A stretch of DNA of 64,000 nucleotides from Piromyces finnis finn (taxonomy: Eukaryota; Fungi; Neocallimastigomycota): positions 326,967 through 390,966 of the forward strand of contig MCFH01000053.1 in the NCBI GenBank assembly GCA_002104945.1, read 5' to 3'. The position numbers and the translations under genes are program-made. Of this stretch, positions 16,162 through 27,900 are shown one piece after another (positions within the stretch are counted from its first letter, which is position 1; every line of letters begins with the position of its first letter). The notes below the pieces were generated by a model that saw nothing but the letters and a program-made list of their open reading frames with translations, was not told the DNA's origin and did no database searches.

Positions 16162-18759
16162 TTAGGATGGAATAAACTTTTTCTTCTTATTTAGATCATT
16201 TTTAGAATTATTTTTTGATTTATTTGTTACAGTTACAGCGTTTGATTCCATACAAGCTTTTTCAGAATATTGATAAATCTTTTCATTCAAAATAGCATTA
16301 ATCTTATCATTTTGAGCAATTTGGGATTTGTATATATAATTTTGTTCTTTAGATTTCTTTAATTCTTTAATAAGACGTTTAACATAATTTTCAACTTTAT
16401 TATAGGTATCAGCCAAGTTACTATCACTACTAAGTTTATATATTTTTTCTTGTATGTTGGATATACTGTTAAGTTCATCATTTGATACACAATTTTCTTT
16501 TTCTTTTTCTTTATCATCATCATCATTAGAAGAAGTGGCTTCTTTTTCATTTTCTTCATTTTCATTATCGGATTTATTACTAAGTTCATCAACACTACCA
16601 TATTTATCAATGTTATCAATTTTAACCATATCTTTTTTCATCATAGTTTCAATAAAATGTAATTGTTCAGTTACATCATTCTTGAAGGATTTAAATGCTT
16701 CGTTTTGCTTAGAATATTTTTCTTGAAGATTTTTAATATTTTCATTATTTTCTTCTATTTCTTTCGTCATTTCATTGATTTTTGTAGTTTTTTCTTCTAT
16801 TGTATTATTTTTTTGCTCAACATCATTATTACGTTCAGTAAGAGTTGTTTGTAATTCATCGTTTTGCTTAGAAATCTCTTCAATATGTTGATTCATTTGT
16901 TCAATTTGTGTATTCTTTTCGTTTAATTGCTTTTGCAATTCTTCAATCATTTTATCACGTTTTTCAATTTCACTCATTTCTTTAAGAACAGCTTCTTCTT
17001 TTGGTTTATCAAAACTATCATCTAATGCATATTCATTTAACCATCCAATGGTATTAAGACGGTCTGCATATAAACGATAGAATTCACTATCAATATATCC
17101 ATTCTTTGAAAGAATTCCTTTAATATATTCAATTTCTTGATCTAATGGTAAGTAATGTTCTTTATCTTTTAATTTCATACGACGAATTAATTCTCTAACA
17201 TATGCCATGGATTCCTTTAATTTTTAATTAATTTAGTAATGAAGTTATATATATTATATAAATAAAAAAGAAAAATTAATGTATAAATAAATTTTTTATA
17301 TATAAATATCTATTTATTAAGTTAATTATTTACTTCATTTGTAAGATTAACATTAGAATATTTGTTAAATATTGTAGCAACAAAACTAAGATTTAATCTT
17401 GCATGTCCATTAACAATTCTCTATATAATTATAAAACCATCATTATTAATACATTATTGATTATTAACATTTTTTTTTTTTTTGTTTATAAATTATGTTA
17501 TATTCAAATAAATTATTTTTATTTCTTAAGGTTTATTATTATCATTATTAAATTATTATAATAATATATTACATACGTTAATATTAATGAAACGTTTACA
17601 ATCCATAATTTGTGAAATTCTAAGTACACATTCAGCTCTTTTTTCCTTTTCATCAGTTGAATATGATCTACCTTCATTAATGATTTTCATAACTTCATCA
17701 TTTCCACCCTTGATCATATTAAGACGTTCAAAAAGTGTAAAGTAAGCTTCTGAATCACTGATATCTTTTGAGAAATTTGAAATTGGTTTTTGATCATTAT
17801 GCTTTAAATGGAAATTAAACCAACGTAATAACAATTGCTCATTAGAAAGTTGACCTGCCATTTCAACAGTTTCATCTGGATTTAATAATAAAATAAGTTC
17901 AGGGTGACTGTCAACGTTAATTTCTTTCAAAAGAATACATCTAATCTATTTTTTTTTACCAAATTAATATAAATAATTAAATATAATTAATAAATGAATT
18001 TTTGTTGATGTTATTGATTGATACTATTAATTAATATTTTATATCAATGAATATTAGTTATTTTAAATTTTACCATTTGCCATAATAAACCAAGTACTAA
18101 ACCGGCATTCTTATGTAAAATATCCTATATTGTATAGGTAAAATAAAAGAGTAATTTAAAATTAATATTTAATTTTTTTTTTTTGTTTTTGCATTAATAA
18201 TAAAAAAAAGCAATTATAATAATTTTAAATAATATTAAATTAAAAAAAGTCATCTCAATTTTTAATTTTTAAAAATAAAATAAAAATTTATAATCATATC
18301 TTTTTATTATTATATTAATATTAGTTAATAATTAATAATATATAAACATACTTCTGAACCAATATTGACAACAACAATACCACATTTTTTAGCACTTTCT
18401 AAAATAATGTTATGATTTGCAGTAACCTTGAAAACAACCTTTGCATTGTCTGTTGAAACTGCAACTGTTTTTTTATTATCAAATCCAGAAAGATTAATAT
18501 CTCTATTTAATTTATCTAAATTAATATTGTTTGGATTAATTTGATGAAGAATATAACCAAAGAGAATACCATCTCTAAGAGAATCTAATAAATCATTAAC
18601 CTTTTCATTTTGTTTATTTTCTATGTCTGATTGACTTACTGGTAAGTATTTTGGGGTAAGTTCTGTAATATGACCTAATAAATTATCAATATATTCAGAA
18701 TAGGCCAAAATTTCTTGGTTAATATCATTACTTTTCTTTTGTTTATCAGATATATCCAT
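16162..18759 (-). CDS. Fimbrin/plastin-type actin-binding domain (CH1-CH2, ABD1 only) fused to a long coiled coil
   Basis: Approximate exons: 18352-18759, 18074-18126, 17574-17930, 17333-17420, 16162-17214. Fimbrin ABD1 motifs: SLRDGILFGYILHQINP, NHNIILESAKKCGIVVVNIGSE-DILHKNAGLVLGLLWQ, LSNEQLLLRWFNFHLK, ISNFSKDISDSEAYFTL, RIVNGHARLNLSFVATIFNKY. The last exon is E/K/Q/N-rich with heptad character. Confidence 0.8.
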
Positions 18760-19840: not shown

Positions 19841-20011
19841 TTAACTTGTTTGTTGATTTTCTTCTAAATCATTTAATGAGAATAAAATATACCTATAATA
19901 TATAATAGTATATAAATATGAAATCTTTTATAGTAATCATTAATATTATATATTCTTAATACTTACAAGCATCTTAAAATTGACTTTGCATCACCCTTAA
20001 CAATATCTTTA

Positions 20012-20053
<42 letters not shown>

Positions 20054-22361
20054 TTGATGAGTTAGTAATTAGTTTTATATTGGTTAATATTATAATATGT
20101 GTATTTATTAAAATTATGTATTATACCAGAAGGTTTAATTTTTGAACAATTTATACCCAAGTTATTTAATAAGTAAATACTAAAATTTACATTTTCAAGC
20201 TATTATCATTTTAAATTATAATGAAGAAATAAATGTAGAAAAATAATTATTACAATGTGAATAAGCATATTTTTATCTAATGTATAGAAATGTGTTTTAT
20301 TTAATTGATTTTTTCACCTTTTCTGAATAAGATGATGGATTTTCTTTATAGTTATAAGATGGTATAAATATATTTTTAATTAATCCAATGAGCCATAAAA
20401 TATATACACCATTACTAAAATCTTCGAGTTCGTTAATTTGTACATTCATTAATGCAAGATAATTATTACAGAAATTAACTAATAACTAAAAGTATTGTAT
20501 TGAATAGATATAGGATAGTACAAATTAATATAAATATTATTATATATGATTATAATATATATTATAATTTATCTTTATTTTTTTAATATTATTTTTATTA
20601 ATTTTTTATGTACTTCTTTAATTTCAGCAATCTTATCTTGGTTTTCTTGCATCTTATCAAATACATCTTCATCTTCATTAGTATCCTCTTTTCCACTATC
20701 AACTTTTTAAAATTTAATAAATTTATATTTGAATAATATCATTACATAAATTAAATAAATGGGATATAAATTATATATATTTATTTAGGTATATTAGTAG
20801 GTTAAATTTTATTTATTTGAATATTTTTATGATAATTTATACATACGGTAATTTATATCTACAGCACTTTTTATATATGAAGGGAAATATTTTTTAATTA
20901 TATACATTATAAATTAGAAAGTTTTTTTTTAAATAATTAATTTTTATTTAATATTTTAAACTACAATAAAATAATTTACCCAGCTTTATCATTGTATTGA
21001 GTTTCATCTCCTGATATAGAATGTAAGGTAGTTTTATTTTTAACACCGCCGGAACCAATTTTCTTTATAATTACAAAAAATTAATAAAAAATATATAAGT
21101 TATATTTTCATATATATATATTAATTAATTTATTTTCATACATCTTGGTGTGTAATTGCAATAGTAACATTAGATGGAATTGCTAACGGACATGGTGCAT
21201 CTTTTAATAATAATTTATGAGCGTTATTTATTATTAATATTTTAATATTTTTATATTATTTTAAAAATAAAGTAATATATTGTATGATATATTATATTTT
21301 ACAATGTGATAAATCTACTAAGAATGCCAGTATAGAAGAAATATCTCTCTTAACAATTCCTATTTAAAAATAAAATTGATAAATGTTATATTATTGGGTA
21401 TATAAAATTATATAAATTATATATATGTGAAAAATTAAAAAAAAAAAAAAAACCTTCAGCTGTCCAACGTTGTGGATCACGTTCTAATCCTAATTTATCA
21501 ACAGCAAACTGAATACATTTATTAATATTTGAAATTTTATTTTTCTCTGTAGAGCCTGGTAAAATATCATCAAGATTTTCATATGTTAAAGTTTCTTTAA
21601 AATAATGTAACAATAATAAATATTTAAAAAAAGAGTTTTCATAAGTTATATAATTCATAAAATTACATATTATTTTTCTATTAACAAAATATTATATGAA
21701 ATAATCCAAGTAAAAATATTTAACATAATATTTTTTTTAAATATATACCGATGAATGCTGCTAAAATTTGACCATCTGATAAATCATAAACAATATCACG
21801 TACAATTAAATGCTGTTTTTGAAGGGTTTGATTAATCCATGCTGTTAGTGACTTTTTATATAAAAATATTGCAGTTATGTTAAATATTATATGCATATGT
21901 AATTATCAATATATTAGTATATAAACTATTTATAATTAAATAAAAAAGTTTGACATGCAATAAATACCCTCATTAATGTTTTAACATTAAAGTCATTCTT
22001 TATGATGATAATTATGTAATATAAAGGAAAATTGTAGTTTATTTTAAAAAAAAAGTAAAATTAATTAAGATTTTTCGTTCTTTCATTTTTAATTAGTAAT
22101 AACTTTGTTTTAGTTACTTTTGATGAAGCGTGTAATTGGTATTCTTTATTATTATTTTGTTGTTGTTAATTCATTTATTAAAAATATATTATTAATAAGC
22201 ATGAATAATTAATAAAATTATTAAAATTATATTTATATAAAAAGAAAAAAATTATTCAAAAAGTTAATGAAAGATATTTTAACATATTTTTTTTTTAACA
22301 AATTATAACATAATAACATAATACCTTTATTTACTGTTGTTTTTTTAACACCTAAATCCAT
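19841..22361 (-). CDS. PARV: Parvin (two atypical CH domains; ILK-PINCH-parvin complex component)
   Basis: CH1: SLTAWINQTLQKQHLIVRDIVYDLSDGQILAAF...RWTAEGIVKRDISSILAFLVDLS...PLAIPSNVTIAI. CH2: EDVFDKMQENQDKIAEIK..VNFCNNYLALMNVQINELEDFSNGVYILWLIGLIKNIFIP..PSSYSEKLENVNFSIYLL..KPSDIVKGDAKSILRCLYILF. Both are collinear with recalled alpha-parvin (VLIDWINDVL..IVKDLAEDLYDGQVL; FADGVYLVLLMGLL..FVP; RPEDIVNCDLKSTLRVLYNLF). The start ATG at 22361 is tentative; stop TAA at 19841-19843. Confidence 0.85.
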
Positions 22362-24909: not shown

Positions 24910-27900
24910 GTAATTATATATATATATATACTATTTTACTTTACAATATCAAAAAACTTACCCCATATCAATAATTTCATCTGTTATTCCAACCAATAAT
25001 TTAACATCAATATCTTTCTTTTCTTCTTTTTTAGGTGTTTCTGTTATTATTAAAAATTATGTAAAATAAAGTATTATAAATAATTTTTAGTATTAATTCA
25101 AGAGGAGTATTACTATAAATTTTTATAAAATTAAATTTTTTTTAATTTATTATTAAGAACCTTTTTCTTCTCTTTCCTCATCTTTGTGATCAAGTTTTAA
25201 ATAGTTATAATAGATATTTAATAAATTAACTTTCAGTGCAGTATCGTTATTTTTAAATATTTCATTCATAAGTTTTACTGAAGTTGTATTTAGCATTAGA
25301 CGAGGATGTACAATAAATATATGTCCTATTATTCAAAATATAATAATTTTTGGTATAAAAATATTATTTAGGGTATATCTAATATATTATTTATATATAT
25401 TGAATATATACCAATATTTTCTAACGCACATCTCCTTATAATTGGAGAAAATTGTTCATTCAGATAATTTATTAATATCTGATATATTGTTTGAATATAA
25501 TCCTATAATAATTAAAAATTAAATAAAAATGAAAATATGTATTAATAATATAATTTCATATCAAAAAATAAATAATGTTTTATTTTTTTTTTACCTTTTC
25601 AATTAAGTATTTATATTGTGGTAAAATATTTTCTATTTATATATAGAAATGATATTAATTAGTATTGAAATATGCTTTATATTCATTTCATTATTTTATT
25701 ATTATTTTTTATTTTTAATTACTCTTTTTCTTTTCTGGAATTTTCTCAAAATTTGATTCACGAATAACTAATCCAGAAACAATAAAACATCGAATATATC
25801 CAGCTACACTTGTGATTTTAAAATTTTTAATTTTTATCATATTATCATACTTTTCTTTTAAGAAATCTATAATTTTTTTTAATACCAATTATTTAAAAAT
25901 TAATAAAAATTAAATATATAAATATTTAATATCTTAATTTAACTTTTTATGTTTATATACCTAGACAGCATTTTAATAGGTTTAATGTTCTATTATAATT
26001 AAAAGTTATATTTTCAATTATTGTACATAAACATGGAATTGCAGCTTGTACAATTGCAGTTCCTTGACGATGAATCATTAACTCTAAATCTTGTTCTACC
26101 TGTTTCAATACATTTGGATCATAATTCTTCGCATACTTTAGTGAATTTTTATATATCATAATAATAGATCTTAAAATATTTTTATCCATCGCAGTTTGAT
26201 TCTATTTTTTTTAACCAAGATAGTTATATATACATTAAAATATAATAAATAATTTAATGTCATATTTTATCTTGAATAAATAATAATAATTTATTAATAA
26301 TAATAATAATAACAATAATATAATCAACATACTGAACTAGGATGGAAGTATGGTTGTAAAGTTACAATATGATTTGCTAATAATTCTGGTTTAGCTCTGC
26401 TAAATTGGTATAATAAATTTAAGCAACTATTGATTTTTTCATTCTATAAATTTTAATAGGTAATTAAATAATTAATTATTATTTTATTATGTTTGTTTTT
26501 TATATATATATATATATTTATTTAATATAAATACATTACATTAGTTTTTATATTTTTTTTAGAGTCTCCTTCTTCTATAGTATCGACACCTTCTAAATCA
26601 ATTAATTGATCAACTAAACATTCTATAACTAAATTACTAATACCATACACTAAAAGAGTGGGTATTGGGAATTTAATTTTATTTTCATTTATGACTGCTT
26701 GTTTAGCTGCTACATTTGAGTTTTCAGTATTATTTTTGTTTTTGATATTCGTTATTGGTATTAACTTTTCCTCATCTGAAACTCCTATATTCAAATTGTA
26801 TTTACTAGAGATACATTTATTTATGGTATTACCAGTGATATCTGAATCAGCTAAAACGGATAACATTTCAACTCTTAGCTTAACTTCATTTTTAGTCTGT
26901 GTAGTTAAAGAAGTGTAAGAAGGAATCATATCTTTTATTTTTTCTTCTTTGTCATCTAGGGTTTCTTTGGTAAAACCATTAGTCCCATCAATTATGGAAT
27001 TGATATGGATCATGGCTGAATTAGAATTGGAAGAGGACAATGTAGAAAGAGAGGAAAGATTATTTCTTAAATTTTCAATAGAAATTAATTCTGGTGAAAA
27101 AAAAGAATTGAACCATATTTCTTGAATAGATTTTAATGCCAGTTCCTTTACACTCTTTTCTTCATCAGTTGTTCTTTTCAAAATCTTTTTACAAATATCC
27201 TTTAACATTTCCTTATTATTTAAGTAATCCTCATATTTTGTATTGATATATATATCTTTTAATAATTTAATAACTCTCTTTCTAACATTAATACCAATAT
27301 CTAAAATACGATCTGTAACAACTTTATAATATTGTTTAGTAACTTCCGAGAAGTTTAAGGATGATTCTGAGTTGATTAAATATTTCCCAATTAATTCAAT
27401 AGACGCATCTCTTACAACAGCACTAGAATCTTGAATACAATGAATTACAGTTGAAGCAATTTGAGGTTGCATTAATACCTCACAATCAACATTGACAATT
27501 ATCTGAATACTTCTTAAAACCTTTGAACGTACACTAACATGAACAGAATCTAATAATAATACGATACGCTGGAATAAGACATCATACATTTGAAAAATGG
27601 ATTCATTTGATGATAATATAATAGATATGGGTATGAGATTTAATGGTGAATTAAATTGTTTCTTTATAATATTCTTTATAACTTGGATATTATTATATTT
27701 TGTTGATGTTTCCACATTATCTTTTATTATATCTTCAATAATATTGTTTGAAATATCTTTATCTTCATTATCGACATGTTCAAATATATCAATAACTGGT
27801 ATGGAAGATGGTCTATATAAAAAATTAATTTTTATTTTTTTTTATTTTTTTTTTATTTTCCAATATAAATATGGATATATATAAATATATGAATAAATAA

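Follow-up and report, generated by a model that had tools for sequence, protein, structure and literature searches.

A probable parvin of the gut fungus Piromyces finnis: gene structure, predicted ILK-docking loop and short N-terminus

Parvin is a cell-adhesion adaptor best known from animals. What an integrin-free partial adhesion machinery does in early-diverging fungi is a question already raised for basal fungi (e.g. PMC5042518), and the gene described here comes from a 64,000-nucleotide stretch of Piromyces finnis DNA (the window). That gut fungi without integrins have a parvin is already known: it was published in 2016 (PMC5042518), where Table B of Calkins & Youssef lists a Piromyces parvin transcript (g.1163), ILK (g.2454) and PINCH (g.16322) without integrin, FAK or Src. 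The parvin call in that study is a BLAST yes/no, and stage expression was measured for four scaffolding genes only. The parvins that it reports from Neocallimastigomycota belong to the same gene family and the same phylum as the protein analysed here, and the Neocallimastix lanati orthologue (P0007) already carries the JGI name 'parvin'. What the P. finnis gene adds to the BLAST listing is a gene structure and a residue analysis; its product has until now been labelled 'hypothetical protein' in GenBank and 'CH domain-containing' in UniRef.

The gene lies on the minus strand at window positions 22361-19841, with its ATG at 22361 and its TAA ending at 19841, and its 14 exons join into a coding sequence of 978 nt that specifies 325 amino acids. 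Its 13 introns range from 74 to 181 nt, each with GT-AG borders, and three of the exons (2, 3 and 9) are microexons of 26, 30 and 20 nt. This model was set by comparison with L058, an orthologous, intronless, mRNA-like contig, and its translation is identical, letter for letter, to the deposited P. finnis protein BCR36DRAFT_406788 (hereafter P0004). A 13-exon, 316-aa model with acceptor 20695 was dropped, as it misses the 20-nt microexon at 20866-20847; L058 points to acceptor 20702. An earlier note on this DNA had given the end points exactly, and its description of the gene as intact and intron-rich holds for the open frame over 14 exons, the 13 GT-AG introns and the identity with P0004. The exons, in window coordinates, are as follows.

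Exon 1, 22325..22361, minus strand: aa 1-13; start codon at 22361; short N-terminus, WH2-bearing extension absent
Exon 2, 22118..22143, minus strand: 26-nt microexon, aa 13-21; GT-AG, colinear with L058 ORF1
Exon 3, 21968..21997, minus strand: 30-nt microexon, aa 22-31; pre-CH1 helix, aligned with 'DPKLQELMK' of alpha-parvin
Exon 4, 21749..21851, minus strand: aa 32-66; CH1 helix A and 'DGQIL' motif; Pfam CH at 9e-5; top PDB match alpha-parvin, 0.0018
Exon 5, 21454..21594, minus strand: aa 66-113; middle of CH1; weak Pfam CH; gapless to 9uiu_A
Exon 6, 21303..21359, minus strand: aa 113-132; last helix of CH1
Exon 7, 21142..21200, minus strand: aa 132-151; parvin-type post-CH1 strand 'PCPLAIPSNVTIAITHQD', aligned to alpha-parvin 'RAPIRLPDHVSIQVVVVQ'
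Exon 8, 20980..21062, minus strand: aa 152-179; inter-CH linker, low pLDDT
Exon 9, 20847..20866, minus strand: 20-nt microexon, aa 179-186 'AVDINY'; found through 'AGAVDINYY' of L058 and required for identity with P0004
Exon 10, 20614..20702, minus strand: aa 186-215; N-linker helix (D198, F200, D201, M203) and start of CH2 helix A (K209), on the basis of 2vzc_A/4edl_A and PMC2572193
Exon 11, 20318..20485, minus strand: aa 216-271; CH2 core with predicted ILK-contact loop N253-I254-F255-I256-P257 and C/E-loop insertion; hot-spot residues from PMC8591738
Exon 12, 20127..20199, minus strand: aa 272-296; helix E of CH2
Exon 13, 19967..20006, minus strand: aa 296-309; start of CH2 helix G (K303, L306, R307)
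Exon 14, 19841..19892, minus strand: aa 309-325 and TAA stop; end of CH2 helix G (Y310, F313), acidic tail

The only folded domains in the AF2 model of P0004 are two helical CH bundles, at residues 26-130 and 199-314. The earlier note had aligned both with animal parvin, and PDB searches bear this out for each of them: the CH2 region (residues 196-314) finds beta/alpha-parvin first at 2.4e-22 and CH1 finds alpha-parvin first at 5e-13 to 1.1e-12, with the strongest non-parvin CH protein at 6e-7. Residues 22-152 align gaplessly to alpha-parvin 9uiu_A over 131 residues including the flanks of CH1. Single exons behave in the same way, exon 11 of CH2 matching beta-parvin at 3.8e-8 (next family alpha-actinin, 0.15) and exon 4 of CH1 placing alpha-parvin first; the linker exon, the CH1 middle exon and the helix E exon gave no PDB match when queried singly because they are too short. 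Language-model atlas neighbours are 'Beta-parvin-like' for exon 11 (0.92) and gamma-parvin clusters of 316-320 aa (0.95).

Beyond the fold, P0004 has features specific to parvins: a helix ahead of CH1, a strand in the linker, the N-linker helix and an insertion in the C/E loop. An N-linker helix before CH2, packed on helices A and G, is a parvin trait (Lorenz 2008, PMC2572193); in P0004 its residues D198, F200, D201 and M203 align to D248, F250, D251 and L253, K303 and R307 of helix G align to K355 and R359, and the AF2 model predicts a short helix at 199-202 as well as a beta-hairpin at 142-168, in the region of the post-CH1 strand. The C/E-loop insertion, which is 3-4 residues relative to type-1 CH domains, is gapless to alpha/beta-parvin through residues 305-323. 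Mapping the P0004-parvin alignments onto the residues named in PMC2572193 and PMC8591738 showed that D248, F250, D251, K260, V264 (as I), L268, K355, L358, R359, Y362, F365, F307, V308 (as I) and P309 are kept. Sequence, structure and language-model neighbours thus agree on the identification made in the earlier note, and they support the reading that the gene encodes a parvin in both of its predicted domains.

P0004 has the same two atypical CH domains (type 4 and type 5) in the same order as the animal parvins (PARVA/actopaxin, PARVB/affixin and PARVG), and it shares with them the pre-CH1 helix, the post-CH1 strand, the N-linker helix, the length of the C/E loop, the Phe-Val/Ile-Pro loop and most of the LD groove. 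It differs in length (325 aa versus 372 in alpha-parvin), in an inter-CH linker that is ~18 residues longer, in the absence of the WH2 stretch and in changes at V263, R369 and A257 of the LD site. The parvin-like proteins of chytrids (Synchytrium, Spizellomyces, Nowakowskiella, Fimicolochytrium and Thoreauomyces) are colinear with P0004 over 81-95% of its length in both domains, with longer N-termini (~30-60 residues before the conserved 'LH' motif) and CH2 motifs, 'PDAFDKLF' and 'FFVPLHHY', that are nearer to the animal ones than the gut-fungal motifs are.

Two surfaces of CH2 bear on possible partners. The human ILK-contact loop consists of G305-Y306-F307-V308 and P309 (PMC8591738), and the same loop in P0004 reads N253-I254-F255-I256-P257, so that F255-I256-P257 corresponds to human F307-V308-P309. 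No gut-fungal or chytrid sequence in the comparison departs from Phe (or Tyr), Ile/Val and Pro at these three positions, and the predicted ILK-docking loop is conserved. The paxillin LD-binding patch comprises A249, F250, L253, A257, V263, V264, L268, Y362 and F365, flanked by K260 and R369 (PMC2572193). P0004 keeps, or conservatively replaces, A249 (as V), F250, L253 (as M), V264 (as I), L268, Y362, F365 and K260; the departures are Glu at V263, Asp or a variable residue at R369, and the loss of A257. Most of the putative paxillin-LD groove is retained, as judged from these alignments.

The N-terminus supplies a small new detail. Gamma-parvin, too, has a short N-terminus. In P0004 only 21 residues precede the CH1 region, and the predicted gut-fungal parvin therefore lacks the N-terminal stretch that in alpha-parvin carries the WH2 actin-binding motif (L37, R39-K42; PMC6203859). 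With this stretch missing, any actin link would have to pass through partners such as PINCH, paxillin, vinculin and talin.

The earlier note had called for a search for the rest of the adhesome and implied that integrins are missing. Profile searches of the P. finnis genome found vinculin, talin-type (I/LWEQ) and multi-LIM loci, the last at three places (C113:761634-762779, C155:460006-461192 and C124:432590-433565). Integrin_beta, Integrin_A_Ig_1 and Focal_AT gave zero matches in six frames of the 56.5-Mb genome, a blank that is not proof of absence and that matches PMC5042518. The Pfam Paxillin (LD region) model likewise matched nothing in the genome, a blank that is uninformative, and no partner with an LD motif emerged; one paxillin-like gene lies at C178:41757-42461, with further exons upstream. 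ILK was sought by genome scans with PF07714 and Ank_2 and by matching ankyrin motifs, as regular expressions, in the surroundings of kinases; none of the 48 kinase loci (of 154 PF07714 matches) and 12 ankyrin loci that were read holds an ankyrin-plus-kinase gene. For ILK in Piromyces the source is the BLAST table of PMC5042518, which also reports PINCH. Talin-type, vinculin and multi-LIM loci alongside undetected integrin and FAK domains agree with the published picture (PMC5042518).

Taken together, P0004 is very probably the single-copy parvin of P. finnis, a true orthologue of the animal alpha-, beta- and gamma-parvins and of the chytrid parvins, which, like its animal counterparts, would join ILK and PINCH as third subunit of the IPP complex, here without integrin. 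The conserved loop F255-I256-P257 would be the site by which its CH2 domain binds the ILK pseudokinase, and coupling to actin would run through PINCH, paxillin, vinculin and talin. With no integrin detected, the complex would be recruited by a non-integrin membrane anchor or would have a role outside matrix adhesion. The part in zoospore crawling, encystment or rhizoid anchoring that the earlier note put forward is speculative. In one specific version, a minimal, WH2-less parvin with ILK, PINCH and RSU1 would be recruited by a lineage-specific membrane receptor to form an integrin-independent adhesome that attaches zoospores or rhizoids to plant fibre and leaves actin to PINCH, talin or vinculin; we consider this version unlikely as it stands.

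A somewhat better case, still tentative, can be made for a real parvin orthologue whose role is unrelated to substrate adhesion, such as tethering flagellar basal bodies to actin while zoospores form, or organising actin at the growing tip of rhizoid or hypha. Such sites were proposed for scaffolding proteins by Calkins & Youssef, who cite ciliary adhesion complexes at Xenopus basal bodies (PMC5042518), and the failure to detect integrin and FAK domains in the P. finnis genome fits them; against this, the 2016 stage data cover four scaffolding genes, and parvin is not among them. With respect to the protein's identity and binding partners, a non-adhesion role is compatible with the explanation given above, the cellular site alone being different.

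Considering that Pfam places the two domains of P0004, and of an orthologue, at the level of the general CH family, and that a Foldseek query with the whole two-domain model ranks alpha-actinin actin-binding domains (ABDs) first by E-value, P0004 might instead be a generic tandem-CH actin-binding protein, of the alpha-actinin, filamin or fimbrin type, that resembles parvin. However, those ABD matches have ~16 A rmsd and 14-18% identity, compared with TM 0.86-0.91, 1.3-2.3 A and 35-38% for parvin CH2 chains, and the latter alignments take in 117-130 columns of entire chains of 124-130 residues (TM up to 0.91). In forward searches of PDB sequences only, CH2 scored 82.8 bits with beta-parvin versus 32 with the best non-parvin, and CH1 52.5 bits with alpha-parvin versus 33.5 with Nav2, margins of 50 and 19 bits in favour of parvin. 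P0004 also has the N-linker helix, a linker strand of parvin type and a C/E loop in CH2 that aligns to parvin gaplessly; alpha-actinin alignments end ahead of that loop. The window also holds an internal control, a fimbrin/plastin-type CH gene at 16162-18759 that is encoded on the minus strand like the parvin gene, lies no more than 1.1 kb from it and shares the CH fold. This gene behaves otherwise in the same PDB test, its top matches being LCP1 and plastin-3 (1.6e-19) and not parvin. The generic reading is accordingly very improbable and close to refuted. The neighbour has no detectable similarity to P0004 and is therefore not its tandem duplicate, an origin that we rejected also on its plastin/fimbrin matches.

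The parvin orthologue reading is further strengthened by conservation. Genome searches found one parvin locus in P. finnis, and the gene is conserved in three or more genera of gut fungi (Piromyces, Anaeromyces and Neocallimastix) as well as in chytrids. Identities to P0004 are 66-87% for the orthologues of Anaeromyces, Neocallimastix and further gut fungi and 33-37% for those of chytrids; D198, D201, K209 and P257 do not vary across the gut-fungal and chytrid sequences. Word searches of sequence databases from P0004 found the chytrid relatives and did not reach animal parvins. With dN/dS of 0.12-0.26, the gene evolves under purifying selection. Four JGI samples and an SRA run contain orthologues as intronless contigs of 1-1.4 kb, with in-frame stops 24-27 nt 5' of the same ATG, and these mRNA-like contigs are evidence that the orthologues are transcribed. 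A search for contigs encoding P0004 itself, with records of its own genome excluded, returned none. The 31-mer share of the stretch in runs X1 and X2 was 0.30 and 0.22, where spliced mRNA is expected to give 0.21-0.31, and splicing in P. finnis itself is supported only by this share and by the mRNA contigs of orthologues. The undetected integrins (the canonical upstream partner) and the animal-gut habitat might suggest a pseudogene or relic in decay, or contamination of the assembly by DNA of the animal host; this is the least credible reading and close to refuted, given the frame open over 14 exons, the selective constraint, the fungal orthologues and their mRNA-like contigs, a composition that, judged from the gene alone, looks like that of the fungal genome (coding GC 0.28, GC3 0.14, short AT-rich introns) and an identity to human parvin CH2 of merely ~36%.

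As a discovery the P. finnis locus is ordinary, and it brings no new component to the question of the integrin-free adhesome. What is gained is a verified gene model with three microexons, evidence of constraint and of orthologue transcription, and a residue-level argument that the protein probably retains the loop for ILK docking together with most of the LD groove and lacks the WH2-bearing N-terminus. Together, the gene model and residue map make a direct test of CH2 partners and localisation cheap.

The gene lies in a stretch of 18.5% G+C at C182:326967-390966 of the P. finnis assembly (56.46 Mb in 232 contigs) and has the following structure:

Window 22361-19841, minus strand: spliced parvin gene with 14 exons and 13 introns

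The exons range from 20 to 168 nt and give a CDS of 978 nt encoding 325 aa, while all 13 introns are GT-AG and 74-181 nt long, bearing out the earlier note's description of the gene as intact and intron-rich. When the largest exon was used for a protein-pattern scan against JGI metagenome records, one intronless mRNA-like contig from a related fungus was obtained, L058 (Ga0138319_1547040, 1341 nt), and all exon junctions agreed with the 14-exon model when checked by alignment against its two ORFs. The contig reads DKAGAVDINYYENGKE, which exposed a microexon of 20 nt at 20866-20847 and placed an acceptor at 20702. This microexon, not visible by ORF-based reading, was detected solely via the orthologous mRNA contig; two further microexons are located at 22118-22143 (26 nt) and 21968-21997 (30 nt). 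The L058 ORF, used as query in a word search, retrieved the deposited P. finnis protein P0004 ("hypothetical protein BCR36DRAFT_406788 [Piromyces finnis]", 325 aa), to which our model was identical letter for letter, confirming the previously proposed end points 19841-22361. The reading frame of L058 is broken at positions 530-540, between its two ORFs in the first CH domain (CH1); the break is absent from other orthologues and probably reflects an indel introduced during sequencing or assembly. Intron 12 of the P. finnis gene carries a long (AAT)n microsatellite at about 20012-20068.

Pfam recognised only the generic CH family in P0004, an orthologue and the exons. Compared with all PDB sequences, residues 196-314 of P0004, covering the second CH domain (CH2), matched beta-parvin at 2.4e-22 (82.8 bits) as well as alpha-parvin CH2, and residues 22-152 matched the alpha-parvin CH1 entry 9uiu_A at 1.1e-12, so that both CH domains are parvin-like, as first noticed from the sequence. 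The top non-parvin matches, Nav2 and an alpha-actinin-like protein, reached 6-7e-7 (32 bits), and individual exons also gave parvin. The CH1 alignment to alpha-parvin runs over 131 residues without gaps and extends beyond the canonical domain into the pre-CH1 helix and the post-CH1 strand (PCPLAIPSNVTIAITHQDK in P0004, RAPIRLPDHVSIQVVVVQK in alpha-parvin), whereas non-parvin CH families cover only residues 30-99 or 30-133. ESM Atlas neighbours were beta-parvin and gamma-parvin clusters. An AlphaFold2 model built from six orthologues (mean pLDDT 65.8, CH bundles 70-88) superposed on parvin CH2 crystal chains with TM 0.86-0.91, rmsd 1.3-2.3 A and 35-38% identity, while the ABDs of alpha-actinin, filamin and dystrophin fitted it as loose domain pairs (rmsd about 16 A, identity 14-18%). 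Sequence matches and the predicted structure thus supported the assignment of this gene as parvin.

A neighbouring gene and an exon of another gene lie on either side of it:

Window 16162-18759, minus strand: second CH-domain gene immediately 3' of parvin, with two fimbrin/plastin-type CH exons followed by a 348-aa coiled-coil exon
Window 26522-27715, minus strand: 397-aa open exon upstream of parvin, with a Cohesin_HEAT repeat (1.8e-9)

The CH exons of the 3' neighbour scored 5e-9 and 3e-8 against Pfam CH, and their top PDB match was LCP1 (plastin/fimbrin, 1.6e-19); the PDB test therefore separates CH subfamilies within the P. finnis genome, serving as an internal control. Origin of this neighbour by tandem duplication of parvin was ruled out because no similarity to P0004 was found on comparison. 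The upstream exon, judged by its repeat, is probably part of a Scc2/Nipped-B-type cohesin loader gene.

Functional residues from the literature were transferred to P0004 by alignment, with 2vzc_A position 5 set as E246, a numbering that reproduces all residues named in PMC2572193. In the N-linker helix and its salt-bridge partners, as defined by Lorenz 2008 (PMC2572193), D248, F250, D251 and L253 correspond to D198, F200, D201 and M203 of P0004, and K355, L358 and R359 to K303, L306 and R307; these positions are kept. The C/E-loop insertion is present, since the alignment has no gap there. The paxillin-LD groove on CH2 is mostly kept (L268, Y362, F365 and K260 retained; A249 to V, V264 to I), with V263 changed to Glu, R369 to Asp or variable, and A257 deleted. 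P0007, the Neocallimastix lanati orthologue, has Asn at the position of P0004 F313 (human F365), which is Phe in all other orthologues. The ILK-contact hot spot G305-Y306-F307-V308, predicted computationally from the 3KMW structure (PMC8591738), aligns with N253-I254-F255-I256-P257, and its Phe/Tyr, Ile/Val and Pro are common to all gut-fungal and chytrid sequences compared. D198, D201, K209 and P257 are invariant from gut fungi through chytrids.

Actin binding by alpha-parvin depends on a WH2 motif within residues 1-91 (L37, R39-K42) and not on the CH domains (Vaynberg 2018, PMC6203859). P0004 has only 21 residues ahead of the segment that aligns with the beginning of the CH1 construct of alpha-parvin, and five orthologous mRNA contigs carry in-frame stops 24-27 nt 5' of the same ATG; therefore, no upstream coding exon is missing. 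At the sequence level, the gut-fungal form is a short parvin in which no WH2 can be recognised; the N-termini of chytrid parvin-like proteins are somewhat longer.

All genome matches of P0004 fall at this single locus. Orthologues from Anaeromyces robustus, Neocallimastix lanati and further JGI contigs are 66-87% identical (mean column identity 82%), and those of Synchytrium, Spizellomyces, Nowakowskiella and Fimicolochytrium 33-37%. Pairwise dN/dS against two orthologous cDNAs was 0.12 and 0.23. Four JGI samples and one SRA run yielded orthologues on intronless contigs of 1.0-1.4 kb that include UTRs. In runs X1 and X2 ("organism A"), 0.30 and 0.22 of sampled 31-mers from the 2.8-kb parvin stretch were present, against an expected 0.21-0.31 for mature mRNA and about 1.0 for genomic DNA, which is indirect evidence that P. 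finnis parvin yields a spliced transcript.

Profile searches of the P. finnis genome with Integrin_beta, Integrin_A_Ig_1 and Focal_AT gave no match. Vinculin is represented by two loci, each matching head and tail parts of the Pfam model; these and two ankyrin or kinase loci are:

G000:C112:1758650-1762540, minus strand: vinculin-family locus, Pfam head and tail
G000:C35:274113-277865, plus strand: vinculin-family locus, Pfam head and tail
G000:C90:169922-179077, minus strand: 3170-aa open frame full of ankyrin repeats (Ank_2)
G000:C154:28217-34623, plus strand: three ORFs in tandem, each about 320-330 aa long, with near-identical kinase scores (68.9-69.6 bits) and an identical profile range

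From their domain matches, the vinculin-family loci may be a paralogue pair, or vinculin and an alpha-catenin-like gene. Two I/LWEQ loci were detected, as well as 36 LIM matches; among these LIM matches are a single ORF with four LIM domains (paxillin-like) and, as possible candidates for PINCH, three multi-LIM loci with several exons. No ILK was found in the intersection of kinase and ankyrin matches and the 60 loci read. Ank_2 is hugely expanded genome-wide (1396 first-look candidates).

That Piromyces has parvin was known before this analysis. Calkins & Youssef (2016, PLoS One, PMC5042518) described the ILK-PINCH-parvin (IPP) proteins and the four scaffolding proteins as encoded in Orpinomyces C1A and in Anaeromyces, Piromyces and Neocallimastix transcriptomes, with integrin, FAK and Src not found in these gut fungi; for Piromyces, their Table B gives parvin as g.1163, ILK as g.2454 and PINCH as g.16322, and P. 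finnis is included in their Fig. 1. The N. lanati orthologue likewise carries the JGI name "parvin". Parvin was not found in Amoebozoa or Breviatea by Kang et al. (bioRxiv 2020.04.29.069435). Three readings were raised in PMC5042518: the proteins could be a remnant, could work with an unknown substitute for integrin, or could serve a purpose other than adhesion. There, hyphal-tip growth and flagellar assembly were favoured on the basis of scaffolding-gene expression. To this we add a verified 14-exon model including three microexons, the absence of a WH2-bearing N-terminus from gut-fungal parvin, the predicted residue-level state of its ILK and LD sites, and evidence for constraint and transcription.
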